Below, one piece after another: positions 1-29,915 of a DNA stretch of 64,000 bases. The notes under the pieces are model-generated. The model did not search any database, was not told the DNA's origin, and worked only from the letters and a program-made list of their open reading frames with translations. The number at the start of each line of letters is the position of its first letter. Position 1 is the first letter of the stretch. A program made the position numbers and the translations under genes. Source of the stretch: Selaginella moellendorffii (Eukaryota > Plantae > Lycopodiophyta); assembly GCF_000143415.4 (NCBI RefSeq), contig NW_003314285.1:1-64000 (forward strand), read 5' to 3'.

Positions 1-260
1 CAGAGATGCTCATGATCCTGTTTACATGAAGTTCTCAAATGGGTGCTGATAATCGATTCAAAGCACTCTCCAAGAGCTCGAGCACGAAAAAAATACCTGA
101 ATTGCTCATCAGCAGTGGAGCTCATGTTCTTGCTGCCAATGTGAGGGAAAGTTACGACGAATCCCATGGAGGCGAGCTTGCGGCAGAGAAGTATCATCGG
201 GTTTATGTGACCCTGCGTGGGAAATGGAAACGCAAGAACGTGAGGCGGCTGGGAATCCAT
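1..260 (-). CDS. UDP-glycosyltransferase (family 1 UGT), 5' part; gene runs off the window edge
   Basis: Not in the ORF track. Minus strand from ATG at 260 reads MDSQPPHVLAFPFPTQGHINPMILLCRKLASMGFVVTF...DEQFR. GT donor at 96, AG acceptor at 18, then exon 2 reads IMSIS. Near-identical to the N-terminus and intron position of the UGT at 15431; catalytic His (GHINP) present. Confidence 0.9.
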   Translation of the reverse strand, partial: MDSQPPHVLAFPFPTQGHINPMILLCRKLASMGFVVTFPHIGSKNMSSTADEQFRYFFRARALGECFESIISTHLRTSCKQDHEHL

Positions 261-313
261 GGACGCTTCCTCGATCTACCTTACCCAAATACTTTGTTAC
301 AGAAAAAACAATT

Positions 314-368
314 GGTTATTATATAGTCTATAGTGGTTACGACATGAGTTCGAATCTCGGTGGGACCT
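314..368 (+). pseudogene. tRNA-Gln-like remnant lacking the anticodon arm
   Basis: GGTT..TATAGTCTA..GTGGTTACGACAT is joined directly to GAGTTCGAATCTCGGTGGGACCT. These resemble the 5' half (A box) and the T-arm/acceptor 3' end (B box) of plant tRNA-Gln; the anticodon stem-loop is missing. Confidence 0.6.
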
Positions 369-371
369 CGA

Positions 372-1375
372 AATCGTCACTTTCGTTTTAGGATGAAACC
401 GGGGAATCATTCGCGATCCTCACACTCGAGCAGGGCAAGTGTTTGGTTCCAACAATATCCAACCTCCAAAGCTATGCTGCAGCTGAAGTTTCCTTCTGCA
501 AGAACATTACCAAGGGATCCATCTCCCGGCATCTCAGAAACAATGGCGACCTGGTAAACAAGTTCTACGAGCGACTTTATGTGAGATTCATCCCGGGGAA
601 TCCATCTGACCTCCCACCTCATGTTAATCATTCAATGGCATTAGCGGGCATTTGCTTTTACCACCTCGTCAATGGTCCTGAACAACCAAGGCATGCAGAA
701 CGTAGCATGAGTTTCGCGATCAGAGAGTTCCTCCAGGAACAATCTCTTGTGCTCTGCAGGATAAGAACCGGCAAAGATCCTCATGAGCTTGCACCACAAA
801 GGCTTCATTCCTCGCCGTGAATGGACCACACCGATCACCCACGTTCCTCTCCAGAGCCTGAAGAGAAGAACAAAATGCCCATAGAAGGAAGAACTAAATC
901 GAAGGAATGAGCTTGAATCCAGTCTCACCTTGGACAGCCAATGCAACGATATGTTACATAATACAATGTGGAGGCTGGAGCTGGGAAAGAGACGCTCGTA
1001 AAAGGATCCAGAGACAGCGGCAGTGAAGCATTGCAGCGATGGCGATGACTGTTCTAGCTACTGGAACAGCGTGTTGAAGTCATTGGAGCTCAAGTCTGAG
1101 AAGAACGCTTGGATCTCCGGCTCCATTGCTGAGCATGCTCGAATTGCCTCGCCACAAGCCCCACTGCACGGATTGTGTTTGTAGCCAGACACACATCCCA
1201 GATCGGCTATGCGGACCGGGCTCGTTTCGTCATAGCCAAAGTCACTTGCTGCTATCACATTCTTGAGAGCTGGAGCGATGAGCGAGAAACCCACCGCTTG
1301 CTTGGCGGAGTTTCGAGTGTAGCTATTGATTCCCACTCCGCCCAGCATTCTAACTCGCCAGAAGAATGTCCCTAG
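372..1375 (-). pseudogene. SABATH-family carboxyl methyltransferase pseudogene (copy 1)
   Basis: Motifs GGVGINSYTRNSAKQ, IADLGCxSG, FFSDLSSNDFNTLF and GSFYERLFP. Frameshifts, an in-frame TAG after NTLFQ, and an inverted segment at about 398-642. Confidence 0.85.
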
Positions 1376-1529
1376 CTTATAGATCCCGTAAGAGCAAGGT
1401 CGAATGAAGAAGGACTAGTCCACAGTCCTTCGTTCTAATTTCGGCGAAATCTACCAAACTCGCATCTAAGTTGGTAGGAATCTCGAAACCAACAATCAAC
1501 ATAGATATAACTATATCACAGTGATGATG

Positions 1530-1845
1530 CTTTGGCAAAGTTGACGACAAACCATTTAGCTGGACGTTTCCTTTGGCTGCATGGCGCAGCTCCTTGGGCT
1601 CCATGTCCTCCTTGATACGAACTCCGACTTTGCGGGTGTCCACCACCCACGCGGTGTTGAAAAATTGCTCGGCCCAGCAAGGCAAGCACAGCATGGGAAC
1701 TCCAGTGAACACGGACTCAAGTGCCGAGTTCCATCTGCAATGCGAGAGCAAAGCACAAACAGATTCATGCTTCAGCAATGAAAAGCTTTCAAACCATGGA
1801 GAATTATTCATAAGAGATAATCAGCCCCTTCTCATTCTGGCTTGT
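1530..1845 (-). pseudogene. UGT pseudogene, 3' fragment containing the PSPG box
   Basis: Reads LKHESVCALLSHCRWNSALESVFTGVPMLCLPCWAEQFFNTAWVVDT; homologous to 13881-14340 with internal deletions. Confidence 0.85.
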
Positions 1846-2139
1846 CACTGGAGATCGACCCACAAAATGAGAGGTTTTAGAGAATATTCGCAAGTATTCG
1901 TGATATTGTAGGAATATACTTAGAACAAAATCTATTTTAGATACATAGATTTATAAAGCTTTTAAGAATCTGTAGAGAAAGTTGCTTGTACATTAAATCT
2001 GGATAAGTAATTCATTCAAGCAGGTAAGTTTATTGTTGATGGAGATTGAAGAGTATGAACAATAAGTAATCTAAGTATGTATAGGCATTCCATAGTTTCT
2101 CACAATCCAAACACATGAGAGCACTGGCATTCAAAATAA

Positions 2140-2435
2140 GTTGCTACGTGTTGCATGTAATAATGCTTAGTTTGTTTAATAGTAGTGTTATTCTTACTTA
2201 TTAATTCAATTTATTAAATAAAATTTATAATTGTAAGCATGTTTGTAATTTATAAACACAAGATGATAGAATAAAAAATAATATACTAGAAGGGGCTTAA
2301 GAAATTTTATATATTTAAACATGTTTATAAATTATAAATTATAAATACAAGATTAATCTAAATGAATAATAACTGTTAGATGATAGAATATCTTAAATAT
2401 CCAAGCATACTCTAAGTATATCCACTACCCTACAG
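2140..2435. repeat. Dispersed AT-rich repeat (probable non-autonomous TE fragment)
   Basis: Aligns by eye with 29637-29915 and partly with 28920-29068 (TTGCTAC.TGTTGCAT...CAAGATTAATCTAAAT...CAAGCATA.TCTA..TATATCCAC). Confidence 0.75.
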
Positions 2436-3779
2436 GTTTGCTCAAGCAAACCAAAACCAAAAGCTTTAATAATCTAAAAACAAAAAATACATTAGGAGAA
2501 TTGTTTAATACTCTTGGAAAATAGAAAACCATTTGGTGAAATGTGTATATACATTCCCCAATGTCCCTAGGGATTAATAAAAAAATTGGGTATGCTACCC
2601 TCCTTGTAAAATTACACTAGTGATATATCCTCGTGCTAGGGATATGGATCTGCACACAGTGTGGTGTCAACAATCACAACCTCTCCTTCTTGGCAGAAAT
2701 CACACCTTATTTGCTAACTTGAGGATCCCATCCAAGGTCATTAGATCCCTCTGCAAGCGAGCCATGCTCTACCACTCCACAAGCCACCTTTGGTAGAAAA
2801 CTAGTTAGCAATATTCCCCAACTTTATCTAAAACCATCTTTAGGCCTCAATGGTCCTCATGCTGCACTGGCAAGGCTAATGACAGTTCTCTTCACTCCTT
2901 GTGGTGGGTACAGACCACCACATAGGGATTTGCTGCCACAAGCAAATCCCTATAGCATCATGTTTTTTTTTCTTAATTTTTTGTTTGATTAGGTATTCCT
3001 AGAATAATTTCTTAGAATTTCATAAAATTTCTCTAACTAACACCATTAGCCCCCACAAAACAACTGCCTCAATTAAGTAAGCTAAGGATTTGTTTGATGC
3101 ATATCTAAATGGGACTTAACCTGCTAATATGCCAGTTTACCTTTTATGTAATGCCCAAGAAGGATCTAATAAAATGTAATGCTAGATGGTTCTCAAAGAA
3201 TGGTTATTATGAATCATTTCAACTAATTCTAGCTTGAGGTAGTGATCCCAAATGAGATCTCCTTCCTTTGGGACTATGGCTGATGACATCCTTAAGTATT
3301 TGATACCATTCTTCAAAGTAGAGAAACTGATATGAAATATGTAATTCTTGCTGGGTATAGTGATTTCAAATTGCTCAATGTTTCAAAGCTAAGATATGGA
3401 AGAGTAGCCATTGAGAATCTTATACACAGTAGGTAGCCTATTATGTTTCAAACCTTTATGATTCTCTATTCTTATAGTGAGAAATCTTTGTTAAACATAG
3501 TTGTGATTTAATGGTGGATTGGATGCTTGATTTTGTTTTATTAATAAAGGGCTATAAAGAAAACCAAGCATTATTTCTAAGCATAACATATTATTATTTT
3601 CTAAACTTGTAGTGAAAATTATATATTTATATTATTTATATAATATTAGTAAATAAATACAAATGTTAGGATACCCTGCCAGAAAATGGAAGTGTATACA
3701 CTCTCTAAACATTACAATTAAACCCCTAAATTACATTTTTGTGTCTCTCAATTTATATAGCCTTGGTATCTAAAGTTAA

Positions 3780-4130
3780 TATAGCTCAACTTTATATAGC
3801 TTTATATGTCATGAGCTTATATGGTTGCAAAGCTTCGAAAGGAAATATAAGCTGGATGTTTGTTTGTCCAGCCACTCCAAACAGCCCATATCCTTTATCT
3901 ATAAAGATATGTTCAATTTGTGTTTCATCTTGTAGTGCAAAGGCCCAATCACGATACAATTTGGATTCACGTATTGGACAGCATCCAAGGCCATATTTTT
4001 GGAAGGAATTCACAAATACCCAAAAGTCACATGTCATCCTTTCAAAGTGTTGCCTGTGTCCTCATACTGTAGTGTGACTTGTGGGAAAAGAAGAAAGCCT
4101 GGACATAAAAACTATTATATTTATCATATG
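3780..4130 (-). pseudogene. UGT pseudogene, middle fragment (continuation of 1530-1845 across a ~1.9 kb insertion)
   Basis: Contains WVFVNSFQ and nucleotide similarity to 14440-14830 (CCAGCCACTCCAAACAG; ATACAATTTGGATTCACGT); frameshifted and AT-shifted. Confidence 0.8.
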
Positions 4131-4396
4131 ATTTTATTTTAAAACACTATCATAAACATAAGCTTGGCTTTTGATATTCAAGGTATTTAATTATATGTCA
4201 ATTTCTTACTATATATTACACTGCTGATTTGTGTATAATTTGATAAGTGGTACAGGATATAGAATATGCTTAAATATTCTATCATCCTATCTTTATAAAT
4301 GATAAAAAATTAGCTTAAATTTTTGGAATCATTAACTTCTTTTTATTTTATTTTTTCAGAAGTGTATTCATTTTAAACCTTCTATAATTTTAAACC

Positions 4397-4399
<3 letters not shown>

Positions 4400-4476
<77 letters not shown>
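4400..4476. repeat. (AG)n microsatellite, about 38 units
   Basis: Perfect AG run. Confidence 0.98.
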
Positions 4477-4480
<4 letters not shown>

Positions 4481-5599
4481 TATTGTCAAAGGTATCAAAA
4501 ACTTTTATACCATCATTTCAATCTAGTGTCTACTTCCTTGAGTAGCATAAAGCTCAACTACTAGCCTGCAAAAAAGAAAAAAGAAGGATAGTTAAGTTAT
4601 GCCAAAATTGAATAAGTCATTAAAACTTCTTTAAGATCTATAAATGCCTATTTGCAATCTTTAAACTAGATGAAAGATAATATTGATGATTTCAATAATG
4701 CTCACAATAATGTAATACAATAAAAAAAATGATTAACAAAATGACTAATATGTTACACTTTGCCAAGGAAGTATTGCATATCTTTTACACACTTTAGATT
4801 AAAACAACCCCAAAGCTATTAAAATCAATTTGCAAGCTAACTTTTCATAGTCAATTTAACACTTTATGGACATTATGGATATGCTCCTTTCATGTCCCCT
4901 CTGAATGGATCAAAATATCATTAATAAAGTTAGTAATCACTTTTGGTATATCACAAATCATGATCTACTAGAAAGCCACTAAAGCAATGTTCAAACTGAT
5001 TGATATCACCAAGAATTTATATAATGGCTATGGCTATATAATTAGTAGTATTTGTTACTATATTTTACTTTTTAGTTTGACTTAGAAAAAATATAGGGCG
5101 ATATTCAAGTATACTATAGAATATACCTCAATTTAATGATAATTTTACTTCTCTATTCTTCTTATTATCACTAATATTAAACACTATGTAAGTGGAGATA
5201 GCAAAAGAAATTTACACATATAATAACAATCCCAATGAGCCTTAAGATTGTGAAGAAATCAAGCTCTAATCCATTACACCTAAACCTCCAAAACCAAAGA
5301 CTCATTTGTGTTGATAGAAAGGAAATACAAACTATAAGTTTTGGCTGGATAAGAGTGCAAAAACCTTTAGTGGTGGTGTGGTGGTTGTTGCTATGGATCA
5401 TGCTTTTCTCACCAAGCCAGCCACTCCATTCTCACTTGAACTAGAATTTTTTTACCTCAATTCAAGTTATAAAATTTTAATCTAGTGAAAGGAAACAAAT
5501 GGAGAAGTGAACAAGGTGTAGGGTTGGTGTAAAGTGTCTTGCTTGGAAGATTGTCAATGATAGGCATTTACAATATTGAGTATAAATTAGGAAAGTAAG

Positions 5600-7080
5600 T
5601 CATTTAAAAAGATATCTATACTTGACTTTTTATTATGCATATGGATGCTTTCAATATTGGTATTAGAGGTGTGTTGATGCAAAAAAGAACAAATGTGTAT
5701 AGTCAATATCATCTCATTACATATATCAATCATATATGACAACTAGCAAAGGTGAAATACTCTACAATAGAGAAGTGTTTAGCTATGTGGCTCTCATATT
5801 TTGCAAAAGGGTGATCATATTACAATTACTTCATTATTAAAGTGGAAAAATTTAGTTGGTTGTATTGTTTGATGGGCTTTAAAATTTTAGATATATAACT
5901 TTGAGGTTGTTTATCACTTAAAAAGTTTTATAGTTAATGTTAATACCCTTTCTTAAGCTCCTTTTTCTTCTTTACTCTCTTATTATATCCTTGACAAGTT
6001 TGTTATTTCAGCATTAATAAATTTTTTGGACAAAGATTCCATATCATTGGCAGTTATACTTGATGTGAAATATCCATAAGGCGCAAAATTAAATTTATCT
6101 TCTCATATTAAGTTTTGTGAGGCTAAAAATTTGAGCCATAGATTCAAAAACTTTGTGATAAGTTTGAGAATTTTACATCACTTATTAATGATTTGCCCTC
6201 CTATCATTTATATTTTTAATATTACCTTGAGGATTACCTTTTTTACTTTGTGAGAATTGATTTTAATAACCATTTACAACTGGTGGTGCCTTTGACATTT
6301 ATTCTATGCTTTCTCCATATTTACCATGACTCTCCTTTTCTAGGTAGGTATATGAGACATTGTTATATGACAGAGAAGCTCTATAAGTCCAGAAATATGA
6401 CATGATATCATTTAGTACGTGCATAGTTGTGTATGATGCAAAAACATATAATACATTGCCCTTGTATTATAAAAGGATAGTTAGAGTTAATTGCAAATTC
6501 CTATTTATTTATATTAGTAGTATTTAAAGTGAAATAGCTTTTTCCATGCTTGGCTACTGGTAAGAGGACATTATTATTGCTTTCAATTACTTAACTTGTT
6601 AAGTGGAAATAAATGCTCTTGCTAGTGTATTTGCAACTGTTATTAAATATTTTCTTCTCAATTAAGTGGTATTCTAATATTCTTGTCTAGAATGGATTCA
6701 CTTAGACAATAGTCCTATATTTATGGTTGAGGTATTTCATATTTTGATATCTCAATTAGGAATATGCCACATTTTCACAAGTGTTTATCATCCATATGTA
6801 GATGGTTTGGTTGAACGGCTCATTTTATCTTTTATGGGGATGATCACAAAGTATATATTCAACATTTAGATTATAATGATTATTTACCAACTTTTTAGTA
6901 TGCATATGTTATAGGGTGTAGAATTTTATTAATGCTTCACGATATAAATTCATGATCTTATATTGTCAATGGAGTTGAGTTTATTTTTGTGATTGCTATG
7001 AGTTGTTGATACTAGGTCAATAGCCCATTAACAAGAGAACCTTAATTACATTCCATCCTCTCGAGTGGAGGGGATGATAT
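5600..7080 (+). mobile_element. Degenerate Ty3/gypsy pol remnant (RNase H + integrase) ending at a polypurine tract
   Basis: DAFNIGIRGVLMQK (RNase H DAS-like) at ~5640. YHDSPF...YVHSCV*C zinc-finger remnant at ~6320-6440. HLDNSPIFMVEVF...TSVYHPYVDGLVERL integrase core at ~6700-6820. GAGTGGAGGGGA followed by TG at ~7063-7076. Many stops. Confidence 0.75.
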
Positions 7081-8849
7081 GAGTTATATGCTATTATTAG
7101 TATAATGGGACTTTAATAGTCGTTAGATTGGTTTTAATCTAAACCACTTATATAAATTAGGGTTTTAGACTAATTTAATATATCATACACTCACATTAAT
7201 AAAAATTAAGGAATATTCTTATTAGGATCTCTAGCTAATAGTTTTGGGATATTTGGGGTTAAACTTCATTAGATTTGAATAATACTAGACTATATCACCT
7301 TTTGAGTGTAAATTCTTGAATTTTGTTGCTTATAATTCACCACGCTTCCCTGTAAATTCACGCCCTCGTGAATAGAAGCTGAAAGCCATAGCTCTTTTAA
7401 AATCCTCGCTCTCTTGACACCCTATCACTTAAGTCGAGCCTAACTGGAAGCAAATTAAACTTACCAAATGTCAATCTGAATATGTGATATGATTCCCTTA
7501 GCCAACTAATAGAGTCAAACCCAAAACCACTCTGATAAGGACACTTAACCAAGACACTTAACCAATTTGAAAATAGGGTGCAGTCTAGATCTTTTTTCTT
7601 TATATCTGAACCCTTGGCTTTGGTTGCTTATATTGGGAAGTCTAAATTTAAGAGCCTACACTAGTACTTAGAAGTAAGACCTAACTTGGTGAACCAACAA
7701 CTTTTTTTTAAATAATCTAGAATCGATAGTATGAGAAAGAGAGTATATATATGGGATAAAAAAAAACTCCTATTAAGCTTTATTACAAAGACAAATTTCA
7801 TATGCTTAAGGTTAGATAACACCTTTCTTTAATATCTTATTAATATTTACATATAAGATTTTGATCTCCTTTGACAACCAATGATAAACATCCCTAGTTG
7901 GAATAAATGATACATTGTAATCTTTGCATTAGAAAATATATATATTAAAAAGTAATAGAAAGATAAAAGTGATAGAAGTAAAGATAGAAACAAAGGGATG
8001 AGGTGGAATAAAATTGAAAAAAAAATATTAAAATGAGAAATATGAGACAAAGGGGAGAAGCTTCAAAATTATACTTAGTATGATTGTATTGCAATCAATC
8101 AAGCTTGACTCAACATGATTGAAGATTAAGATTGACACTACCTATATACATAGATAAATCCACCTTATCCCTATGTATGACTATTGCTATAGAGAATAGA
8201 GACTAGCTTTACCGCACAACACAAATATAAATGGCAATATATTGAACAATATAAGATAAATTAACCAACATAAAAAGGATAATATATAACCTTTTTATTA
8301 TAAAACGAGCTTGGAAAATAAAAATTTGATGGACTAATGCCAACTAAACCCTTTGATAGTACTTACGAAGGAAGGACAAAGGAGAAGGGGATGCTAATTT
8401 ATTCATGCAAAGATCTTTTGTAAATAACTAAAGAGAACAATTTGAAAGATAACTTATAAGAGTTTAAATATAAAAGGTAAAGGCTTATAAATAAGTTATC
8501 GGTTAAAAGTTTTGAAATATCGGTTAAAAGTTTTGAGATACTTTGGGGTTAAGTGTCCTTAGGTTTGAATAGTATTGGGCTAAATAACCTCTTAGAAAGT
8601 CCAATTTTAAGAACTTACATTTGGTATTGAAATGGTTGAAGGTGTGAACTTGTAAGATGGTGGATTGTAAACAACCAAAAGAATAACTCAAAAGACAATT
8701 TATAAGGGTTCAAATATAGAGGAAAAGGGTTTATGAATAACATTTTTTAATTAATTAAAAGGGTTTTAAGCATACTTGAGTTTAAATAATACTAAGTTGG
8801 ATGATCTCCTAGGAAGTCCTAATTTCAGGAGCTTACACCCTCTACTACT

Positions 8850-10000
8850 ACTTGTTTGACTCCTTATTTCTTGGATAAATCTCTATATAAACATTAGCCC
8901 AAGTTTTATACTATGCCAACTGATAGAGTACCTATATCCTTATTAGGCCATTAGTATACTAAAATAATGTTAAACTTTATTTGGCTCTATATATATGTGG
9001 CCAACCTCATTGAAGTCCACCCCACTCAAAAACTCATTTATAATATCTACATGCCCAATAGTGAATATTATAGCCATAACCATATCCTTGTCCTTGCCTA
9101 CCTCCAAATATTAAGACTTTACATGGAGTAGTAAAACATCATTTTCTAAGATATACCAAGAACAACTTGAAGTACATATAGCTATAAGTGGGAAATATGA
9201 TATCTTATAGTAAGTATTGTGTTAACTGAAGAGTATAGATATTCAAAGGTGGCTATGGCAACTACATACACAAAACCCATAAAAATCTTGTAAAAGTGTT
9301 GGATACAACATATCTAACTTGATTACTCAGTTTTTCACAAAGCAAAAAGTTCTAAAAATGAACATCATATTGTATAATTGACTTAGATAACCTTTGATAG
9401 AGAGATGATGCAATTGTTAAAAGGTATTATCACAATTGTTAACTGTAGCGCACCTTATCTCTCTCCCCTTAAGCCAATTGGAAAAGAGGCAATTGCTTGA
9501 CACCTTCATTTCTGCACTGAATCTACTAATCCTTCCATTATGTAAACCAGCTATTCCATGTGATGTCTAATACGTACGATTTTCAAATTTAGGGGTAGGA
9601 ATATACCTTGCTTAAGGGTATATTATATTTTAGGTAGCCACTAATCAATGGGAATTGAATACGTGCCATTTGCTCTGATATTAACTGTAGCGCATTTTAT
9701 TTCTCTCCTTTTAAACCAACTGGAAAAGGGGCAATTGCTTGATGAGAGAGCCCTTAGTGGCTATTTTATCCCTATTTATCCCCTAAGGTTCCAAGGATCC
9801 ACAGTGACAGTATATCCAAATCTCATCCCATGATCACATGCACTACACTTGTTAACATATCTAAATAAATGCTTGATAACATTTAGGCGAAAGCTCCAAT
9901 CCATACAAGTGGCTACACTCAAGCTATTGTAATATTGCAATATTATCCCTTGGGAAACTGTGGGAAACTCATAAACACCAAATATCATCTCAAGAATAAT
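8850..10000 (-). mobile_element. Second degenerate retroelement remnant (integrase zinc-finger-like)
   Basis: LFRYVNKCSAC in ORF 9776-9988 resembles the integrase CxxC; ~60-bp direct repeat at 9439-9500 and 9681-9742; heavily decayed. Confidence 0.4.
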
Positions 10001-12779
10001 AAATGATAATTACTATAAAGTGATTGAATCAATAGTACATAATATTTCTAGGATTTTTAGGGAAGAAATCTAATTAAATGCTAGGATTGGTAATAAGAGC
10101 AACAAAAGTTGCCACTATCAATTGAGTTTGATTATTCAATTAAAACTATATAACATCAAATAATTACACCAATTGCTACTCTAGAGTCAAAAAAGAAGGA
10201 GGCTAGTACAAAAGAAGAGTATACTACTCTACCATCAAGATAAAAAAATATAAATAGAGAAATAAAAGAAAAGAAATAGAAGACTTATAAGGACAAAAGA
10301 GATTTAGATAATGCAAAAGCTACATCTAAACCAAAAGCACTAAGCTAAACACTCATCAAAAATAATTAAATTTGCCCTTAAACTCCACCAATATGAGTGT
10401 ATAGAATATAAAAATATGCATATTTGATTAGCCCCAAAACCCTCACTTTTATACAAGAGTGAGTGATATGGATTGAAACTTATATGATAGCTATCAAAAT
10501 CCCACTATACTATAATATATATGGCATTATAGCTATATATTTAAACCTTATAATTATGGAATAGATGAAATGCCATGTATAATGGATCACATTTTAATTC
10601 AAGGCATTTGTCCTTTATCAACTCTTATAGATAATATTTATAAGTTGAGAGTTCCCAATTAATATGTCATGGGTATGTGGTATTACATAAGAACCCAAAT
10701 TGGCCATACCAAAAGGTTGTTCCTTAATGTATTGAAATCTTGAAAAACATGGTAAAATAAGAATTGTTTTTTATCCCACTAAAGAATTTCTCCTAATGGG
10801 TATAGAAAACTGAAAAAGAAGAATAAGTCTTGGTTCCACGAGACAAGGTCTTGAACTGGCAATAATTTCTCCTATTGGGGAGGATTTTTCTTTTGATAGA
10901 ACTTTTCTTAGGAAGATTTTCTTATGATAGGGCTTTGTTGAGAATATTTGCCTTATGACAATTTTATCTAGCACCCATTGGGACTCTCAAAGTAGTAATT
11001 TTCCTAATGGATTATAATTATTTTGCTAATTGAAAAATGTTGATGATAAAAGTGGTGATTTTTCTGAAAAAAAAATTTCAAAGTTTTTTTCTGATGAGAA
11101 GGCAATTCTTGATAGACAAAATGTCCTTTGGAAAAAATTGTTAAAGTTTTTTACCAACAGAAAGGATGTCTATTAGAAGAGCTTCCCAACACCATATTTT
11201 TCCCAATAAGGAGATTATTCAAGGTAAGTGGAAGTTGTAAAAAATTTAAAATAAAACCATCTACATTTATATAAGTTATAATTAAATTGTGGTTATGGGA
11301 TCAAAACAATTTTTCATAAGGATGGGCTATAAGCTTTAAAGATGCATTTAAAATATCTACTCATGTTCACCAGATGTGAATGCACAGATTAAAGTGTGTT
11401 TTGATTAACACTATAACTTATTTAGGTTGATGAAGGTGTTACAACCTCCAAAGCATCCTACCTCAAAATTTTCATTTGGAGCATGATACTTATTTCATTT
11501 AACAGTGAGATCCAAGTGTATAGCAAAACTACATAGGACTAGTAGGAATAAAGCATCTTCAAGTAGCATAGAGGAATCTCATGCTTGAGAGTATAAAAGG
11601 CAAGAGTTCAAAGTCTAAAGGCAGTTAGACCTCACCCCTTGGACAATTGCAAGCATTGGCTCTTAGATTTCATAAAGAAGGTTTCCTTCCAGAGAGAAGT
11701 GAAGAATCTTTGTGTGGCTCATAATTGGCTATAGCTACATAATGTTCCTGAGATTGTTTGAGTCTATGCAATGTTTTTAGAGTCCTTCCATCCTATAGTT
11801 GAGTTGGAGAGGAATCTTAGTAAATCTTGCAATCGGTCATGGAAACACAGTGTTTCTGTACTTAGCATCTTTGATGGCTATGGAAGCGGCATCCAAAGTG
11901 CTTGTGCCTCCTAGGGTCGGGCAAAAAGTCAAAGCTAGGACTCATCCACGTGGCAGCAGCGGAAATGTCATCGACTTCCTACCTCTAGCTGCCCTCTCCA
12001 ATATGGCCCGATCTCCAGCTTGGAATGATGCAGCCCAGCTCCTAGTGCTGTGGGCATGCCTCCCACTGCAGCAGATGCCGATTCTTGGCCTCCCAAGCAG
12101 CATTAACTCCTCAAAACACTCTTCTTGTGCACACTAACTCATTTCTTTCTCTCCCTAGGTGGTGCTTGACACCACAGGGATCATCACACGATCTGGACGT
12201 CTGTTTTAAAAGGAAAAAAAAATGGAGATCTGAATCCTCTAGAAAAAAATGACATACCTCACAAACATTCTACACAACAAAAGCCCAATGTCAAAACCCC
12301 AAGGCATTAGATCCCAATGCTGCCACTGCCACTTGTAACAGACTCTTTCGCCTAGACGATAGTTGAAATCCTGTAGGGGATCAAGACCAACAGGAGATTG
12401 CAGTTGGGAATTTTTGTATCTGTCCGGTATTCACACATAATGTAATGTAATACTAACCCTTTTACACTAGTATATTATGAGATGCTCGTGGCCGTGCTGA
12501 GCGATGTGCGCCATAGGGACCAGGCCGTCTGACAATGAAGAGGTGTTCAAGCTTACAGTGCCCGAGCCAAGAAGGTTTTTAAGTTTTAATGGAGTTAAAG
12601 TGGGCTTCTTCGGTGAGTCAACTTGATGAATTTCTCTCCCTTCTTCGTGGGGATCCCTAGCCACCACACAATTGAAGAACAAGCACTCTAGAAAACCAAA
12701 GAAAGAACATTATAATTCTAAGGTGGGGTGGGAACGTTATTTACGTTCATCATATATTCCATTAGTTTGTGCTTGAAGC

Positions 12780-13751
12780 CATCACTTTCGCTGGAGGATC
12801 ACGAATGGCATAGAAAGATTTACGTGAGGTGGAATGAATGTTACATAGAGTTGTAAAAATCGTTTACCAGGTCGCCATTGTTTCTGAGATGCCGGGAGAT
12901 GGATTCGTGGGTAATGTTCTTGCAGAAGGAAACTTCAGCAGCAACATAGCTTTGGAGGCTTAGACCGTTGGAAATTGATGGCACTGAACACTTGCCCTGC
13001 TCAAGTGTGAGGATCGCGAATGATTCCCCGGTCTCCACATTTCCTTTTACCACAGTCCTGGAAAACCAAGCCATGCAGAACGTAGCATGAGTTTCGTGAT
13101 CAATCAGTTCCTGCCGTGGAACAAGTTTGTCATGGTTCCAGAAACTATATGCATGCGTACCTCTTGGAGCATATCGTTCCATGCCAGCTCCAACCGTGAA
13201 ACATGCCAGTTCTCGAAGGACGTGAACTCGGGCTGGTGCATCCGTGAGAACAAGCAGAGGATTCCTCCAGGAACAATCTCTTGTGCTCGGCAGGTTAAGA
13301 ACCCGCAAAGATCCTCCATGTGCTTGGGTTCGTTGAATGGACCACACAGATCACTCTCTGGAGTCTAGAGAGAAGACAAATGCCCATTGAAGGAAGATTT
13401 AGATCGAAGGAATGAGCTTGAACGCTCGTAAAAGGATCCAGAGACAGCGGCAGTGAAGCATCGCAGCGATGGCGATGACTGTTCTAGCTGCTGGAACAGC
13501 GTGTTGAAGTCATTGGAGCTCAAGTCCGAGAAGAAGGCTTGGATCTCCGGCTCCATTGCTGAGCATGCTCGAATTGCCTCGGCAACAAGCCCCACTGCAC
13601 GGATTGTGTTGTAGCCAGATGCACATCCCAGATCTAGCCACTTGCTTGGCAGAGTTTTGAGTGTAGCTATCGATTCCACTCCGCCCAGCATTCTAACTTG
13701 CGAGAAGAATGTCCCAAGCTTATAAATCCTGTGAGCGTCGTTGCAATGCAT
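12780..13751 (-). pseudogene. SABATH-family methyltransferase pseudogene (copy 2)
   Basis: LDLGCASGYNT, FFSDLSSNDFNTLFQ, GSFYER and [18 protein letters not shown] 1-bp loss plus ~85-bp deletion near the N-terminus and loss of the LFP...LHWLS block relative to copy 1. Confidence 0.85.
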
Positions 13752-13880
13752 TCATATCAAGGACGTCCAAAGTCCTTTGTTCTAACTTGGATGGAATCCT
13801 CCAAAGTGAAGTCTAAGACCATGTGCCCAAGTAAGAAACAAAACCAACCACGTTGGTAGGTGGTGAGGTCATCCCATGCA

Positions 13881-15431
13881 TTATAGGTCACAGTGGAGTT
13901 TCAACGCTTTAGCAAAGTTGACGAGGTTTGCATGCGAAGAACCATTTGGCTGGACGTTTCGTTTGGCTGCATGGCGCAACTCTTTGGCTCTACGTCTCAG
14001 CTCGTCGCCGCTGCAATGGTCTCGTCCCATGACAAACCTCACCATATCCTCGACATGGCTTGCATGGATACCAGCCTCCATGACCTCCTTGATGCGAACT
14101 CCAACTTTGAGAGTGTCAACAACCCAGGCTGTGTTGAAAACTTGCTCGGCAAAACAAGGCAAGCATAACAAGGACTCGAGCGTCGAGTTCCACCCGCAAT
14201 GCGAGAGGAGAGCACCCACGGATTCATGCTCCAGCACCTACGATTGATTGTGCGAAAAACTATCAACCCATGGAGCGAATATCTAGATCATACCTTGACT
14301 TGAGGAGCCCAAGAGATTATCAGCCCCTTCTCGTTCTGCTGTATCCTGGCCGAGAAATCGTTCCTTGCCTGCTCGTCACTGCCTTGGAGAAGATCGAGCC
14401 TGATCACCCACAAGAATGCGTGGCCGCTGTTGGCAAGTCCCTCGTAAACCTGCTGAGCGTCACTGTAAGAGATGGTTGCGACGCTTCCAAAGGAAACGTA
14501 GACCACCGAGCTTGGTGCTTGTTTGTCCAGCCACTCCAAACAGCTCGTGTCTTCGATCCATGGAGACATGCTCAATTGTGTTTCCTCCCCCGTGTCGTCA
14601 AAGTGCAAGGGCCCAACCGCAATACAATTTGGATTCACGTCTCGGGCAGCATCCAAGGGTGCTGCTTCCATCTCCTGGAAGGAATTCACAAACACCCAAA
14701 CGTCATCTTTCATCCTTTCAAAGCGTTGGATTCGGAGTTCAAAGCCTGGATCACACTCGTCCTCGTGCTGGAGTGTGCTCGGGAGGTGACTTGCGCAAAA
14801 AGAAGGAAGCCCAGGCATGAAATCTATTATATCTTTCCTCCCTACAATAAGAACGTAAAAATGAAAAAAGAGAAAAAGGCAAAAAGTAGCTTAGAGGAGG
14901 ACCTTTTGCTGGTAAGATGTGCTTGAGCAAAGGCAAGTGGAAGCAAAGGAGAAGACAGGCAGCGGACGACGTCCACAGTAGTGCCCGAGCGATTCCAAGG
15001 TTGTGACAGAATTCCTGGCTCCACCCAATAAACGCATCAAAGAGTACGCATGTCACTGGAGGGCGACGGGGATCGCTAGCCATGCCCATCACCAATTGCT
15101 CCAGATCCTGTTTCATCCCCTCCATGGAATTGAGAAACATCTGGAGGTTGTTCCCCAGCCGATGCTTTGGGAGACAATCGTCTGGAATGCTCACAAACCT
15201 GTAGGCGAGCTATAAGTCTCCTCGCTAAGGAAACTTGGGCTCATACCTGAAAGAATCATCCCCCACGGCAGTGGATTTCTTGAACTCCTGCTCGTGGCGG
15301 CTGCGAGTGTTGATGAAGGTTATGATGAATCCCATTGAAGCGAGCTTGCGGCACAGTAGTATCATCGGATTAATGTGACCTTGGGCAGGAAATGGAAACG
15401 CTAAAACATGAGGCGGCGCCATTCTGCTCAT
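13881..15431 (-). CDS. UDP-glycosyltransferase (UGT85-like), 4 exons; PSPG box has a 6-aa deletion so may be inactive
   Basis: Exons 15431-15247, 15198-14903, 14841-14294 and 14237-13881 with GT-AG introns in frame. Motifs FPAQGHINP, CLEWLDKQAPSSVVYVSFGS and WAPQVK|VLEHESVGALLSHCGWNSTLESLLCLPCFAEQ. Confidence 0.88.
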
Positions 15432-15817: not shown

Positions 15818-16762
15818 TCATGGCATGAACAACTTGTTGCCACACTTGCACCGCCAAGCCTCGGGGTAGTACTCGGCGGTCTTGACGAGACCCGGCTGGA
15901 TTGGAACATGAACAGGCCTGCAAGGATAGCATCTCCCACACTTTGACGTGCATTGGGGTGGCGACGATCCAGGCCCGCTCAAGCTCCTCCTCACCAGGCT
16001 GCTGCTGGATCGAAGCTCCTCCAATTGCAAGGGCGAGTAATCGGCTACCCAGCTTTGTTGATCCACACTTTGTTGATCATCGCCCATCTGATAGAAATGA
16101 TCATTTGCATAAGTATCATTTCTAAGACTACAGATGGGAGAAAAGGAGAGAAATTTTTTGCAGTACCTGATCGAGCTGCTGCCGTTTTGTGGACAGTGAT
16201 AAAGCTGCGTCTTTGCTTTCATGGACACCTGCAGATTTGAAAGATTTGATAATTAGTAAAGGCCTGGCCGGGTTTAAGAATTTTTGGAAGCTGTCGTGTT
16301 CGAGGACAGGGACAGCGCAAGGAGGACGTTTGTGGAGCTCACGCAAAACCATCCATGGGGTAATAAATCTATCTATCTATCTATCGATCTATATCCAGGT
16401 CTATGCAGCAAGCAAATCATGCGAGATCGAGCACGCATTCATTCATCCAATCAAAGTTTTAAGTTTAAAGCGAGCTTCTTTCCGTGAGTCAATTCCTCTC
16501 ACTCTCTCACTCTTCTTCGTGGGGATTCCTTTCACTCGCAGCATAGATTTGGAGAGCCACACGACACAAGCGAAGAGCAAGAAAACCAAGGAAAGTATTA
16601 TAACGTACCGGTACTCAGTCGCTCCGCTTGAGTTCTGCCAGCGCTGGATGAGTGCAAGCATCTTGAAGCGAGGAGGATGGCAAGTACCAAGTAAACTAAA
16701 CTGCGAGCTCCTCCTCTTCTTCTACTGCAGCAATGCTCTAAGCTCCAAAACGATCGTTTCAT
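15818..16762 (-). CDS. EPFL: EPIDERMAL PATTERNING FACTOR-like (EPFL4/5/6-type) secreted Cys-rich peptide precursor, about 161 aa
   Basis: Exons 16762-16609 (MKRSFW...SLVYLVLAILLASRCLHSSSAG, signal-like), 16228-16167 and 16087-15818 splice in frame. Mature domain GPGSSPPQCTSKCGRCYPCRPVHVPIQPG..AEYYPEAWRCKCGNKLFMP has 6 Cys. Confidence 0.92.
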
Positions 16763-17044: not shown

Positions 17045-17071
17045 AGAGAGAGAGAGAGAGAGAGAGAGAGA
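17045..17071. repeat. (AG)n microsatellite upstream of EPFL
   Basis: AG run; possible GAGA/BPC-type element (inference). Confidence 0.85.
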
Positions 17072-23030: not shown

Positions 23031-24344
23031 ATGAAAACTCTGTTGCTGCTCTTGATCGCGCTGTGGATGATTCTTGCGATTGTTTCCAGTGAGGACGAGC
23101 AGCGCGAATTCAAGGCATGGATCTATCGCAATGGCAGAAAATCGACGAGGTCAGATGGGATGCGTGTTCATCATCATTTGATCGAGAGCTTAGTGGAAGC
23201 GGAGAGAAACCAGAGCGTGATTGTGGTGGCAAGAGATGGATTGGGGAATTTTAGCTCCATTGCCGAGGCAATCGACTCCATTCCGGAACAAAACCAGCAA
23301 AGAGTGATCGTGTGGATCAAAGCGGGAGTCTACAGGTAAAATGAAAAAGAAATCTAGTCTCTCTGTTGGATCGAAAAGGTTCTCACCTTGAGCCAGGGAA
23401 AAGATTGCCATTCCAAAATCCAAACCGTTTGTAACACTCCAAGGAGATGGGAGCTCACTCACGATAATCACTTGGAACTCCACAGCTTCGGATAGAAATG
23501 GCACGAATCTACTCAAGACATATAACAGCGCCACCATTTCCATCAACTCGAGGTTCTTCATCGCCAAGAACATCACATTCCAGGTTTGCTCTAGCTAAAC
23601 ATCTTTGAGAAGTTCTCGCAAAATAATCTCAAAGAAATCATTACTAGAATGAAGCAATTGCTCACATCCATGGTGAGACCGGGAAGCAAGCCGTGGCATT
23701 GCGAATCAGCGCGGACATGGCGGCCTTCTACGATTGCAACTTCCATGGCGGCCAAGACACTCTCTACGATCACAAGGGCCGGCATTACTTCAAGCGATGT
23801 TTCGTGCAAGGAAGCGTGGATTTCATCTTTGGCTATGGAAGATCCCTCTACAAAGTACGTAAAAACCAAACTCTCCATCAAAAGATCACAACCTTTGCAG
23901 GATTGCCATCTCTACTCGATCGCCAACAAAACAGGCGCGATCACTGCACAAAAGAGGACCATTCGCAACATGAACTCGGGATTTTCATTCGTGAATTGCA
24001 GCATCACTGGATCCGGAAGAATTTACCTGGGACGTGCATGGGGAGATCGATCCAGGGTGGTCTACTCGTACACCTACATGGACGCGCTCATAGCTCCTCA
24101 AGGGTGGCAAAACTGGAATCACCCAGAACGAAACAGGTAGATTTTTGCATTTCTTCCAACTTCGCATTGAAAATTCCATCTCTCGCTCCATAGGACTGTG
24201 TTCTTCGCGCAGTACGAGTGTAGCGGGCCTGGAGCAAAGACGAGCCAGCGAGTGGCATGGGCAAGAACCCTCACTTTCGAGGAGGCACAACCATTCCTAG
24301 ACACAGATTTCATCCATGGAGAAACATGGCTTCTCTCCACATAA
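23031..24344 (+). CDS. Pectin methylesterase without PMEI pro-domain, 5 exons
   Basis: Signal peptide MKTLLLLLIALW; motifs IKAGVYREK, QAVALR, GGQDTLYDH, GSVDFIFG and YLGRAW; stop TAA at 24342-24344. Confidence 0.95.
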
Positions 24345-24398
24345 AGGAGACTATTTGTTTCTGATGATACAACTTAGAATGTGACCTTTTGGGGATCT

Positions 24399-26057
24399 AT
24401 GGGTTTTGCAAGCGGAGCTAGTGTCAGATCGATTCAAAGTTCAAGATCGAGATCGATCAAGCAGCTCCCTGTTGATTCTTCCAACACCTACTCTTCCAAT
24501 CTTGTCATCCAGCAGCTCGGGCGATCCGGCAACCTCGAAAACGCTCGCGGTGTTTTTGATAATCTCCAGCCCAGGAACGTGTTCTCGTGGGGAATCTTGT
24601 TATCGGCATATACCCAGAATGGGTATCATTCAGCTGCAAAGGCCATGTTTGAAAAGATGCCGGAGTGGAACGTCGTTTGCTGGACATCAGCGTTCCAATC
24701 TATCTCACAAAGCGGCCATTTGGCCGATGCCAAGTTCATGTTTGATTCTATGCCCGAGCGTACGGTAGTGACGTGGACGGCCATGGTCACGGTATATGCC
24801 CAAACCGGGCATCTATCCAAAGCTAAGGCCGTGTTTGATTCTATGCCCCAACATAACGTTGTCTCGCGTACGGCAATGCTGACGGGTTTTTCTGAAAAGG
24901 GTCAGATAGACGAAGCGCGTGTTTTATTTGATGCTGTTAACGACCGAGACGTGATCTCGTGGAACGCGATGATTTCTGCAAATGCCCAGAACGGGCATTG
25001 CGACGAGGCGAAGTTTTTGTTTGATACCATGCGAGAGAAAAACTCTGTGACGTGGAACGCGCTGCTGTCAGGATTGGCGGAGAATGGACGGCTGGATTCT
25101 GCGAGAGATCTCTACCACAGGATGCCACAGCAAAACGTTGTCTCGTGGACTGCCATGATTGGCGCATATTCCCAGTGTGGGCATCTTGACCACGCCAGGG
25201 CCGTGTTTGAGATGATGCCCGACCGCAACGTCGTCTCATGGACGGCCATGATGACTGCCCTTGCCATCAGCGGGGATATCGACGGCGCAAAAGCTACGTT
25301 CGATACCATGCCCGAGAAAAACGAGGTATCTTGGTGTCTTATGGAGGCCGTGTTTGCCCAGAAGGAACGATTGGAAGATGCCGGGAATGTCCTCGCTAAG
25401 ATGCCGGTTTGGAGCGTGATATCCTGGACCACCATGCTGGCGGCATATTCCCATGGAGGGCATCTCTCCAAGGCAGTGGAGGTTTTCGCTGAGATGCCCG
25501 ACCGCAATGCCGTGTCGTGGACAGTGATGCTCATGGCATATACCCACAACGGGCATCTTTATGACGCCCAGAGAATCTTTGATGAGATGCCCGACCGAGG
25601 GGTGGCTTCCTGGAGCGCGATGGTCGCGGCATATGCCCAAAATGGGCGCGCCGCCGCGGCGAGGAATCTCTATTGCGCGATGAATCAGGATGGGATCAAG
25701 CCGGACGAGCTCTTCTTCAAGACGATCCTGGCGGCATGTAGCCACATTGGCTCTGTGGACGAGGCCTGGCACTACTTTGTGTCGATGATCGCGGATTACT
25801 CCCTAGAGCCCTCGATGGATCACTGCTCGGCTATGGCGGACGCGCTAGGGCGGGCGGGCCGGGTCAAGGACGCCGAGGAGCTCGTCAAAAGCATGCCCTA
25901 TCTCCCCAATGCGAGCTCCTTGGGAGCCCTCGTTGGATCGTGTAGAACGAGCAGCGACGTCGATCGAGGGGCCCAGGCGGCAAAAGCAATGGCGGAGATC
26001 TTGCCACGCGACTCCGCGCCTTACGTGGCGTTGTCCGGAATGTGTGCTGAGGTGTAG
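24399..26057 (+). CDS. PLS-class PPR protein (short-motif rich) with E domain, no DYW; intronless
   Basis: Tandem ~31-aa repeats (FDSMPERTVVTWTAMVTVYAQTGHL); LAACSHIG...ADALGRAGR...SAPYVALS end. Confidence 0.92.
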   Translation: MGFASGASVRSIQSSRSRSIKQLPVDSSNTYSSNLVIQQLGRSGNLENARGVFDNLQPRNVFSWGILLSAYTQNGYHSAAKAMFEKMPEWNVVCWTSAFQSISQSGHLADAKFMFDSMPERTVVTWTAMVTVYAQTGHLSKAKAVFDSMPQHNVVSRTAMLTGFSEKGQIDEARVLFDAVNDRDVISWNAMISANAQNGHCDEAKFLFDTMREKNSVTWNALLSGLAENGRLDSARDLYHRMPQQNVVSWTAMIGAYSQCGHLDHARAVFEMMPDRNVVSWTAMMTALAISGDIDGAKATFDTMPEKNEVSWCLMEAVFAQKERLEDAGNVLAKMPVWSVISWTTMLAAYSHGGHLSKAVEVFAEMPDRNAVSWTVMLMAYTHNGHLYDAQRIFDEMPDRGVASWSAMVAAYAQNGRAAAARNLYCAMNQDGIKPDELFFKTILAACSHIGSVDEAWHYFVSMIADYSLEPSMDHCSAMADALGRAGRVKDAEELVKSMPYLPNASSLGALVGSCRTSSDVDRGAQAAKAMAEILPRDSAPYVALSGMCAEV

Positions 26058-27490: not shown

Positions 27491-29080
27491 TTGACTGCTC
27501 ACACTCTTGTGTTCTTAAATCTAATGTTTGGTTTAGATTGGATAATGCAGTATACAATCTCTTTAGAATTTATTTTTATTATAAATTGGTAGATTCGTAT
27601 AAACTAGCATTCCTTAATTAAATGATTGAGCTTCACATTAGCACAATTTGATTGGTTTGTGGTTGTTTTTGTATCAATAATATATTTATGCTCTTTTGTG
27701 GTCACAATATCTTTTGTAAATTTGTCCATACTTGATTTTTTCTTGAGTTTCTATAGCTATTTTTATAGTTGTAACCAAATTATGTAAAAGGCTTACCTGC
27801 AAGGTAGTCATATTGTTTATTTATTGAAAAAGTTATCTTCCAAGTTCTAGAAATAGTTAAAGTCATAAAACCCATACCAAATATAGATTTCCTAAGGAAT
27901 TTACTAAATATTAAAAATTGGGGGAAGTCTTTTCTCCAAATGCATTCTCCTGAGCCTTTTTAAAGAGTGTTTGAGGTGTCAAGAGAGTATTCAGCAAATT
28001 TATAAAGCTTGAAGTGCATACTAATGACAACTATGTGAAAGTAAATGTGGAGGTAAGAATTTTTCAACTTTATTATATTATTAGTACCAAGCTAAAAATG
28101 ATGAGAAAGAATTTACTCTTAAACTAAATCATCTTTGAACAAAATTCAATTAGATTTTGGCCCATAAAGAAAATTTTATTATACTTAAAGCAAACATATA
28201 AAGGGACTAATGGATTAGTTCCTTTTAGATATACCCCATTTATAATGTGAGCACTAACATACCACAACCTAGCAAATTGTCAACTCTTAAAAATGATCAG
28301 TAGTTTTTTTCAAAGAAAAGAACTAATAGAATCCCACATTAAAGAACTAACTGTTAGAGAATATTTTTGTTTATTCAGGGTAAATTTTCTCTAGTATTGT
28401 TTTAGCATTTAATTGTGTAGAGTGTTTTTGTAATTATTACACAATAAATTTAATGTTTTTGAATAAAATATAAACATTTTATATAATAATAAATTTCTAA
28501 ATTAAATTATATATAAATAATAATATTTAATACTAAAAAATTATACATTGGGAAAAAAGAATAAACTCTCTTGAATTTAGATTATTGAAACCAAAATATA
28601 TATCATTGATAAGAATATGCCATGAATAAAATCATGGGAGTACACTCATGTGTAGGAGAGCCCTCCAATTATATATATACACATACATATATACATATGT
28701 AGCATATACTTTTTGTATGTTGAGTAAAGATTTTTATAATGCACTGTGAGGGCAGTCACAGTACTTGTTTTATATTTTTATTTATTTAGTCATGTACTAG
28801 GATTTGTATCTACCTGTATTATTTTGTTTCTATAATATAACATTGCCATATTTTTCCTATTTATTAGTCCAAAGGATCAAATAGAAGTTTATAATTAATA
28901 AAAAGGTTAGCTAATAAATTAAAATAGAATATATCAGGAAATTTTTAGGAAATTTTACAAATTATAAACATATTTATAATTTAGAAATACAAGATTAATC
29001 TAAATAAATAACAATGGTAGAATATTCTAGAAATTCAAGCATATTCTAGGTATATCCACTACTACCCCAATCCCCTTAAT

Positions 29081-29327
29081 ATTGCAGTTGATCTTTTAAC
29101 AGTTGTAGATCATGAAATTACAGTCTTTAATCTACATCATAGTATCAAAAAAAAGTACTTATAGAATCTCAAAATTTATAAAATTGATTCACTATTAATT
29201 TAATGAAAATGTTTATATTTAAAGTTCTAGATTTTCTTACTATTATAGGTAATTTTAATAATTTTTTAATAATGGTTGACTTTATAGATCATTGATCTAA
29301 AACAGTTAAAAGATCAAAAACTGCAAT
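29081..29327. mobile_element. MITE-like element with ~45-bp imperfect terminal inverted repeats
   Basis: ATTGCAGTTGATCTTTTAACAGTTGTAGATCA at the left versus TGATCTAAAACAGTTAAAAGATCAAAAACTGCAAT at the right; no clear TSD. Confidence 0.6.
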
Positions 29328-29636
29328 CCATGTGGGTCCTTATAGGTTTACTTAAGAAAACCAAAAATCATATTTAAACCAATATAGTTAAAAACCATCC
29401 AATTAATAATTTTTTATCTTCTTTATTTACTAGATTATTTTTAATTTGTTAAATATATATTTTATGAATTAATAAATTTAAGTAAAATAGAAAAAATTAA
29501 AACACATAATTATATACCACTCACATAAATTCATATTGCATCAAAACAGAATACCAACCAAGAGCATTAAATTAGAGTGATCAAGTAAGGAATATCATAC
29601 TTCTTATATCAAAATAATAGGGAAAGTAATAATACA

Positions 29637-29915
29637 TTGCTACATGTTGCATATAGCAATGCTTCTTTTGTTTAATAATTGTGTTATTCTTACTTATTAA
29701 TCTAATTGATCAAATAAAGTTTATAATTCTAAGCATGTTTGCAATTTATAAACACAAGATTAATCTTATTGCATATCAACCATTAGATGATAGAATTAAA
29801 ATGAATATACTAGAAAGGGTTTAAAAAAGTTTATAAATTATAAACATGTTTATAAATTATAAATATAAGATTAATCTAAATGAATGACAAGCATATTCTA
29901 AATATATCCACAAAC
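29637..29915. repeat. Copy of the dispersed AT-rich repeat at 2140-2435
   Basis: Same-orientation similarity over about 280 bp. Confidence 0.75.

Follow-up and report, generated by a model that had tools for sequence, protein, structure and literature searches.

The first 64,000 nucleotides of contig NW_003314285.1 of the lycophyte Selaginella moellendorffii (NCBI RefSeq assembly GCF_000143415.4, forward strand), hereafter the window, carry at their left end genes of two unrelated enzyme families, the family-1 UGTs and the SABATH methyltransferases, whose arrangement and fate are the subject of this analysis. A listing of open reading frames (ORFs), three-frame views, Pfam and searches against solved structures place them on the minus strand in the order UGT-B, SABATH-B, AT-rich block, UGT-A, SABATH-A and UGT-C (Table 1). 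A first-pass annotation of the sequence had proposed an alternating UGT/SABATH order of this kind, including a UGT beginning at position 260, and Pfam, PDB searches and tblastn bear it out; the coordinates that it gave (15431, 13751, 4130, 1845, 1375 and 260) all lie on real features. When all pieces were compared with the 64-kb window by tblastn, exactly two units were recovered together with a third UGT N-terminus at 248-93, and no further UGT or SABATH copy was found between 15.5 and 64 kb.

Table 1. Coordinates of the UGT and SABATH genes, their spacers and the AT-rich block, followed by the blastn matches between the A and B units.
Feature	Coordinates	Strand	Details
UGT-B	15431-13881	minus	complete four-exon gene
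UGT-B exon 1	15431-15247	minus	ATG at 15431; catalytic His in AQGH motif; GT donor 15246-15245
UGT-B exon 2	15198-14903	minus	after a 48-bp GT-AG intron (15246-15199)
UGT-B exon 3	14841-14294	minus	after a 61-bp GT-AG intron (14902-14842); ends at PSPG-box start WAPQVK
UGT-B exon 4	14237-13881, stop included	minus	after a 56-bp GT-AG intron (14293-14238); remainder of PSPG box
Spacer B	13692-13880	minus	UGT-B stop to SABATH-B MLGG ATG, 189 bp (129 bp to upstream in-frame ATG)
SABATH-B	ATG 13691 (or upstream in-frame ATG 13751) to ~12790	minus	pseudogene
SABATH-B pseudogene body	12790-13691	minus	intron 2 kept at 13160-13111, 50 bp, GT-AG
AT-rich block	4126-12789		between SABATH-B and UGT-A
UGT-A	4125-1516	minus	pseudogene
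Spacer A	1349-1515	minus	UGT-A stop to SABATH-A ATG, 167 bp
SABATH-A, overall	1348-395	minus, 3' end inverted	pseudogene
SABATH-A main body	646-1348	minus	intron 1 intact at 928-858, 71 bp, GT-AG
SABATH-A 3'-terminal ~250 bp, inverted	395-645	plus	encodes C-terminal ~80 residues
UGT-C	ATG 260, continues past left window edge	minus	
UGT-C exon 1	260-97	minus	intact; ATG and catalytic His motif; GT donor at 96
UGT-C intron	to 18	minus	79 bp
UGT-C exon 2	from 17	minus	first 17 nt in window
A/B match 1	649-917		matches 13038-13422
A/B match 2	992-1204		matches 13422-13634
A/B match 3	1294-1607		matches 13638-13996; covers UGT stop, spacer and SABATH start
A/B match 4	1599-1777		matches 14076-14236
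A/B match 5	1812-1839		matches 14311-14338
A/B match 6	3821-4052		matches 14472-14728

Evidence for the origin of the alternating order came from a blastn comparison of positions 1-4500 with the window, in which the A and B units are collinear, the UGT-SABATH spacer included. An nhmmer alignment of 3819-4125 with 14470-14837 (E = 2e-41) extends the last of these matches, which then ends no more than 4 bp from the exon-3 acceptor of UGT-B. Because the homology between the two units runs across the UGT stop codon, the spacer and the SABATH start, the UGT and the SABATH gene were copied together, and the pair was duplicated as one unit, as the first-pass annotation had suggested. The alternation thus stems from a single ancestral adjacency, and it therefore counts as one observation of a UGT beside a SABATH gene, not three.

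UGT-B is a complete gene. Its frame is uninterrupted, with exons of 185, 296, 548 and 357 nt adding up to 1386 nt, or 461 codons and a stop. The possibility that its four ORF pieces reflect frameshifts was rejected, as the DNA shows three canonical short introns. The exons are collinear with solved plant UGTs: exon 1 matches residues 1-53 (E = 1.2e-12), exon 2 residues ~91-163 of 8i8z (E = 3.8e-5), exon 3 residues 189-366 of UGT85H2 (PDB 2pq6; E = 5.5e-24), which is the best match for this exon, and exon 4 residues 362-473 (E = 6.7e-15). UGT-B is thus a family-1 UGT (GT1) over its whole length, although single pieces of it, when exons were searched individually, score under the Pfam UDPGT cut-off (15.3 and 15.5 bits). 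The catalytic His motif is present as AQGHINPM in UGT-B and as TQGHINPM in UGT-C, and the same motif is aligned in 8ind. With exon 3 of UGT-B (176 aa) as the query, a word-index protein search whose length window excludes full-length relatives returned no more than two fragments, of 38% identity.

Plant family-1 UGTs bind the UDP-sugar through the 44-residue PSPG box. A complete PSPG box is present in neither UGT-A nor UGT-B, and that of UGT-C would lie beyond the window. In UGT-B, phmmer places a 6-residue gap after NSTLES ("les......llclp" against "leaitagvpMLCWP"), which corresponds to an 18-bp in-frame gap at 14168 in the global A/B alignment. Because UGT-A keeps these residues, the deletion is specific to UGT-B.

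UGT-A has suffered far more extensive damage. Its homology to UGT-B begins at the exon-3 acceptor (4125), and nhmmer, relaxed blastn and low-stringency tblastn found no trace of exons 1 and 2, the catalytic His region included. An insertion of ~1.9 kb is apparent between 1839 and 3821, where UGT-A has 1982 bp and UGT-B 134 bp. Further downstream, a 24-bp deletion takes out both WAPQVK, the start of the PSPG box, and the intron-3 donor; the PSPG motif HCGWNS reads HCRWNS; and an 87-bp deletion with a frameshift precedes the C-terminal NFAKASSL and the stop codon at 1518-1516. The fourth exon is still recognized by Pfam as UDPGT (PF00201; 1380-1811 on the minus strand, 36.6 bits against a cut-off of 19.5). 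The exon-3 remnant sits in DNA of 30% GC, and within 3821-4052, 24 of the 37 substitutions relative to UGT-B are G/C-to-A/T transitions. For UGT-C, the part in the window is confined to an intact first exon, which is 63.8% identical to exon 1 of UGT-B (tblastn), its conserved donor, the first intron and the beginning of the second exon.

Both visible SABATH copies are dead. They are clearly members of the family, since the Methyltransf_7 domain (PF03492; cut-off 29.8 bits) is found in SABATH-B at 13368-13751 (73.9 bits) and in SABATH-A at 1061-1348 (38.4 bits), both on the minus strand, and the top PDB matches of the SABATH pieces are SAMT and IAMT, with SABATH-A aligning to residues 9-108 of SAMT (1m6e). 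The ancestral gene had three exons, with intron 1 (71 bp) after HWLSK and intron 2 (50 bp) after DMLQE. SABATH-A carries a stop codon at 1060-1058 (CAG to TAG), a locally frameshifted stretch that reads KHNPCSGACGE where SABATH-B has NTIRAVGLVAE, and a 130-bp frame-shifting deletion to which intron 2 and the last part of exon 2 have been lost. In addition, its 3' end is inverted: 395-594 matches the reverse of 13035-12831 at 84% (blastn), and residues 248-343 of the S. moellendorffii SABATH protein XP_024527498.1 match the plus strand at 395-643 (tblastn). In SABATH-B, the reading frame is shifted directly after MLGGV, which scrambles the SY..NS..Q region; 86 bp are deleted in the N-terminal S-adenosylmethionine (SAM)/substrate region; a second deletion, of 75 bp, takes out the intron-1 donor together with LFP...HWLSK; and another frameshift falls within the last ~30 codons of the C-terminal tail, as judged by comparison with XP_024527498.1. 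Consequently, an intact frame over the SAM- and substrate-binding regions is absent from both copies. Because SABATH-A and SABATH-B have no lesion in common, the unit probably still contained an intact SABATH gene at the time of its duplication. A marginal tblastn match at 12832-12803 was considered as a UGT exon-1 remnant following SABATH-B and was rejected, as it is the C-terminal SABATH tail; its PPHVN.SM stretch is also present in SABATH-A and is similar to the tail of XP_024527498.1.

The two halves of the unit differ in the way they have diverged. For the UGTs, the ratio of nonsynonymous to synonymous divergence (dN/dS) is 0.15 in exon 4 of UGT-A and UGT-B (54 codons, dS 0.68) and 0.38 in exon 1 of UGT-B and UGT-C (54 codons, dS 0.78). 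Four segments of the SABATH copies, of 21-70 codons each, give dN/dS of 0.8-2.0 with dS of 0.08-0.29. These values tentatively suggest, from small samples, that the UGT parts were under past purifying selection whereas the SABATH parts drifted neutrally. Because the UGTs appear constrained and the SABATHs neutral, the two partners would not have had a common fate. Identity is also uneven along the unit: the global A/B alignment gives 0.75-0.88 over the 3' part of the UGT, 0.80-0.92 over most of SABATH and 0.97-0.98 over 1184-1005, a tract flanked in SABATH-B by its two deletions. One 213-bp SABATH tract is 96% identical, against ~50-85% elsewhere. It is tentatively suggested that gene conversion or patch repair homogenized part of the SABATH region.

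The AT-rich block occupies the place where the SABATH-to-UGT spacer and UGT-A exons 1 and 2 would be expected. Its core (~4100-11500) has a GC content of 0.29 and an observed-to-expected CpG ratio of 0.15, against 0.44 and 0.38 in the part at 11500-12789; over the wider interval 1800-11500 the CpG ratio is likewise 0.15, with a mild excess of TpG/CpA. There is no ORF of at least 80 aa in 4100-11800, and the shorter ORFs are unrecognizable and have no Pfam match. The first-pass annotation had called this block a transposable element (TE). A block does separate the two units, but its identification as a transposon was not confirmed, since long terminal repeats (LTRs), terminal inverted repeats (TIRs) and TE proteins were looked for in it and none were found. 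The composition fits old, methylated and deaminated repeat DNA. Further decayed UGT-SABATH units hidden in the block were also considered and rejected, as nhmmer, relaxed blastn and low-stringency tblastn returned only 3819-4125 of UGT-A. A ~250-bp repeat at 2135-2428, within the UGT-A insertion, recurs twice at 28887-29885; both of these copies are held by a second AT-rich block (28000-31000), whose GC content is 0.23 at 28-30 kb. The block beside UGT-A also contains a perfect (AG)38.5 microsatellite at 4400-4476.

The distances between consecutive genes bear on how they might have been transcribed. The first-pass annotation had given ~110-150 bp between consecutive enzymes; the spacers are indeed short and come near this range, but slightly exceed it: the UGT-to-SABATH spacers measure 167 and 189 bp (129 bp from the upstream ATG), with ~135 bp between the end of SABATH-A and the UGT-C ATG. 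Short spacers are normal for this compact window: 386 bp separate the neighboring EPF gene from UGT-B and 49 bp separate two convergent PPR ORFs. Spacers A and B are 0.47-0.68 identical, apart from the ~60 bp immediately upstream of the SABATH start codon, which reach 0.92 and include a TATAAG ~37 bp before the ATG. Because this conserved TATAAG block precedes the start codon, the sequence hints that SABATH had its own core promoter. The suggestion that UGT and SABATH were co-transcribed is thus not supported, as the TATAAG block points to a separate promoter and short spacers are common in the window.

The locus has also left a trace in the protein databases. A profile built from the two SABATH N-termini was searched against 1.84 billion representative proteins, and the top match (E = 5e-57) was EFJ24577.1, a 304-aa "hypothetical protein SELMODRAFT_414481, partial" of S. 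moellendorffii, a match that bears out the lycophyte origin supposed by the first-pass annotation. This protein is 100% encoded by the window pieces 1694-1551, 1372-1061 and 275-99 on the minus strand, and is a chimeric model composed of the UGT-A tail, pieces of SABATH-A and exon 1 of UGT-C. The next SABATH relatives, EFJ31430.1/EFJ38714.1 and XP_024527498.1, are also from S. moellendorffii and are 42-53% identical; the last is automatically named "gibberellic acid methyltransferase 2". XP_024527498.1 itself seems mis-spliced: its Pfam match falls in two separate stretches, and after LQWLSKA its middle diverges fully from EFJ31430.1, an earlier, partial model of this gene. Lycophyte SABATHs and the seed-plant GAMT clade have both been assigned to group I (PMC7762392).

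No close intact SABATH paralogue was found among annotated proteins, and a word search of 5.8 billion clusters with the SABATH-A part of EFJ24577.1 returned only EFJ24577.1 itself and matches of 40-44%. Near 50% identity this search has little sensitivity, and it missed EFJ31430.1 and XP_024527498.1; with the SABATH-B piece (128 aa) a word-index search, whose length window excludes full-length relatives, gave no match. Among the top 150 SABATH relatives, 20 proteins that are long or offset were examined with Pfam, and a UDPGT domain was found in none of them; Methyltransf_7 is the only domain in all 20, several of which are tandem fusions of SABATH to SABATH. The only model that mixes UGT and Methyltransf_7 is EFJ24577.1, from the locus itself. 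No report of UGT-SABATH clustering was found in the literature.

Comparison with known systems places the locus among tandem arrays. Plant UGTs often expand by tandem duplication, and the UGTs described here resemble those of tandem family-1 arrays (UGT85H2 of Medicago, PDB 2pq6) in sequence family, His motif, PSPG box and exon order. In contrast to such arrays, the repeat unit also holds a non-homologous SABATH gene, the three introns are very short (48-61 bp), UGT-B is without six PSPG residues and UGT-A is wrecked. The SABATH copies belong by sequence with enzymes such as Clarkia SAMT (1m6e) and Arabidopsis IAMT (3b5i), but both are pseudogenes of a divergent lineage that has no annotated living member. 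As in plant biosynthetic gene clusters with UGTs and methyltransferases, non-homologous genes for small-molecule-modifying enzymes are adjacent and were duplicated together; unlike those clusters, the locus has two enzyme types only, no scaffold-forming enzyme, and one partner dead in every visible copy. The closest parallel is concerted evolution with pseudogenization in tandem arrays, which shares the head-to-tail units, the mosaic identity and the independent lesions, and the locus fits this category.

The locus is, with good confidence, the remnant of a tandem segmental duplication, an ordinary decaying two-gene array and not a working two-enzyme module, because no visible unit has both partners intact. 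Beyond the anatomy, lesions, shared junction and chimeric annotation, which are observed, the following history is proposed. The ancestral unit would have been ~2.6 kb long, with a four-exon, UGT85H2-like family-1 UGT and a three-exon SABATH gene ~170-190 bp downstream on the same strand. Head-to-tail copying, most simply by unequal crossing-over, would have produced the series UGT-SABATH-UGT-SABATH-UGT. The duplication appears to be old; the UGT copies would then have been long under purifying selection, while the SABATH copies gained independent disabling mutations, and gene conversion may later have homogenized part of the SABATH region. UGT-A would have been wrecked by the insertion and through the loss of its 5' half, whose place would have been taken by the heavily deaminated, probably methylated AT-rich block; from this block, methylation-driven decay may have spread into the gene. 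UGT-B survives as an open reading frame, presumably impaired through its PSPG deletion.

Several points weigh against this interpretation. The window spans 64 kb, and intact pairs may exist beyond UGT-C at its left edge. The absence of close SABATH paralogues holds for annotated proteins. The dN/dS values come from 16-70 codons each, and gene conversion is suggested by uneven identity. Finally, UGT-B is probably impaired, with a likely loss of activity, but this effect of the PSPG deletion is read from sequence.

The alternative that survives best, while still unlikely, is that the pair is, or until recently was, a functional module in which both enzymes act on one carboxylic acid, giving a glucose ester or glucoside on the one hand and a methyl ester on the other, and that it was amplified because it was advantageous, with intact and possibly co-transcribed units to the left of the window. 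All units inherited the adjacency and its very short spacers; exon 1 of UGT-C and its splice donor look intact; the copy-specific SABATH lesions indicate that the pair was intact at duplication; and the conserved block before the SABATH ATG was kept in both copies. However, a single inherited adjacency is a sample of one and short spacers are normal in the window, the TATAAG block argues for a separate SABATH promoter over co-transcription, both visible SABATHs are dead and appear neutral where the UGTs are constrained, a collection of 15 billion proteins holds no annotated close SABATH paralogue, none of the 20 SABATH relatives is a UGT-SABATH fusion model, and no paper on such a cluster was found. 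A working glycosylate/methylate mini-cluster, as the first-pass annotation had envisaged, was not supported, given that SABATH-A, SABATH-B and UGT-A are disabled and UGT-B has a hole in its PSPG box; the decay of the in-window copies that it described was confirmed, with several disabling lesions in each of SABATH-A, SABATH-B and UGT-A. The lack of a close intact SABATH paralogue, the lack of fusion models and the unlike dN/dS values argue further against a linked UGT/SABATH function. A more specific form of the same idea is similarly doubtful: the ancestral unit might have been a co-selected, ultra-compact module of a UGT85-like gene and a SABATH gene, with spacers of 135-190 bp on both sides, alternative conjugations of one carboxylic acid and possibly overlapping or read-through transcripts, of which living copies would be found left of the window or in other Selaginella.

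It is considerably less probable that a transposon of the Pack-MULE or Helitron type captured gene fragments and multiplied them as a chimeric unit. That two unrelated families share one orientation and are separated by very short spacers would be consistent with such an origin, as would the decayed AT-rich DNA and the dispersed repeat (2135-2428 and 28887-29885) alongside. Gene fragments are not what is seen, however: UGT-B is complete with start, stop and three introns, and SABATH keeps two introns and its full length. Moreover, the copies lie head-to-tail and are not dispersed, with none elsewhere in the 64 kb, the unit is not flanked by terminal repeats, inverted or direct, and dN/dS of the UGTs is well under 1. 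Least credible is a real fused gene product of UGT tail, SABATH and UGT head corresponding to EFJ24577.1, since this GenBank model, while 100% encoded by window pieces, is flagged partial, skirts the TAG stop, the deletion and the inversion, contains a AIVSEMPGDGSLGNVLAEGNFSCSIALE stretch that is the minus-strand ORF 407-631, in which the inverted 3' segment of SABATH is read out of frame, draws just 48 residues from the C-terminus of one UGT and 59 from the N-terminus of a second, together with no more than a Methyltransf_7 sub-fragment (profile positions 13-125 of 335), and is the single member of its 90% cluster.

The remainder of the window holds several unrelated features, of which the PPR genes, the pectinesterase fragment and the EPF-like gene are in keeping with the S. 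moellendorffii genome. An EPF/EPFL-type secreted peptide gene (15818-16228, minus strand; Pfam EPF, 4.6e-21), with its C-terminal cysteine pattern intact, lies ~390 bp upstream of UGT-B and could serve as a synteny anchor for the locus. A perfect (AG)n microsatellite of 13.5 copies follows at 17045-17071. Four large intronless PPR genes are present at 24381-26057 (plus), 42856-45492 (minus), 49746-51737 (plus) and 51786-54437 (minus), with Pfam PPR E-values of 1e-79 to 1e-119; the last two are the convergent pair 49 bp apart, and each of the four has long antisense ORFs, probably a composition effect of GC-rich repeats. A pectinesterase fragment at 23649-24193 (plus; PF01095, 7e-14) is spread over two overlapping frames and represents an intron-containing gene or else a pseudogene. 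At 38792-41123 (plus), a long low-complexity ORF ending in YRGVTR is followed by a second ORF; by eye, this resembles an AP2/ANT-type factor split by introns, and the ORF pieces gave no Pfam match. ORFs at 57469-58398 (minus) and 60423-60899 (plus) have in common a low-complexity repeat of the GLGLGL / SISDSISGPSRTPS type and a stretch resembling ELTKPP(R/K)V(W/R)E(T/M)NALGFHPLRL, and resemble two copies of a repetitive element in inverted orientation.

The main significance of these data is a correction: the apparent glycosylate/methylate cluster is most probably a decaying tandem array, and EFJ24577.1 is stitched together from three pseudogene or gene fragments. Intact pairs adjacent to the window, if found, would make linked conjugation enzymes in a lycophyte a proposal that can be tested at this locus, though nothing seen here argues for that. 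As it stands, the locus offers a small, clear example of co-duplicated partners with different fates, in which the UGTs appear constrained and the SABATHs were lost. It also illustrates how identity can form a mosaic along tandem copies, for which gene conversion is the best reading, and shows methylation-type C-to-T decay that appears to have spread into a gene.

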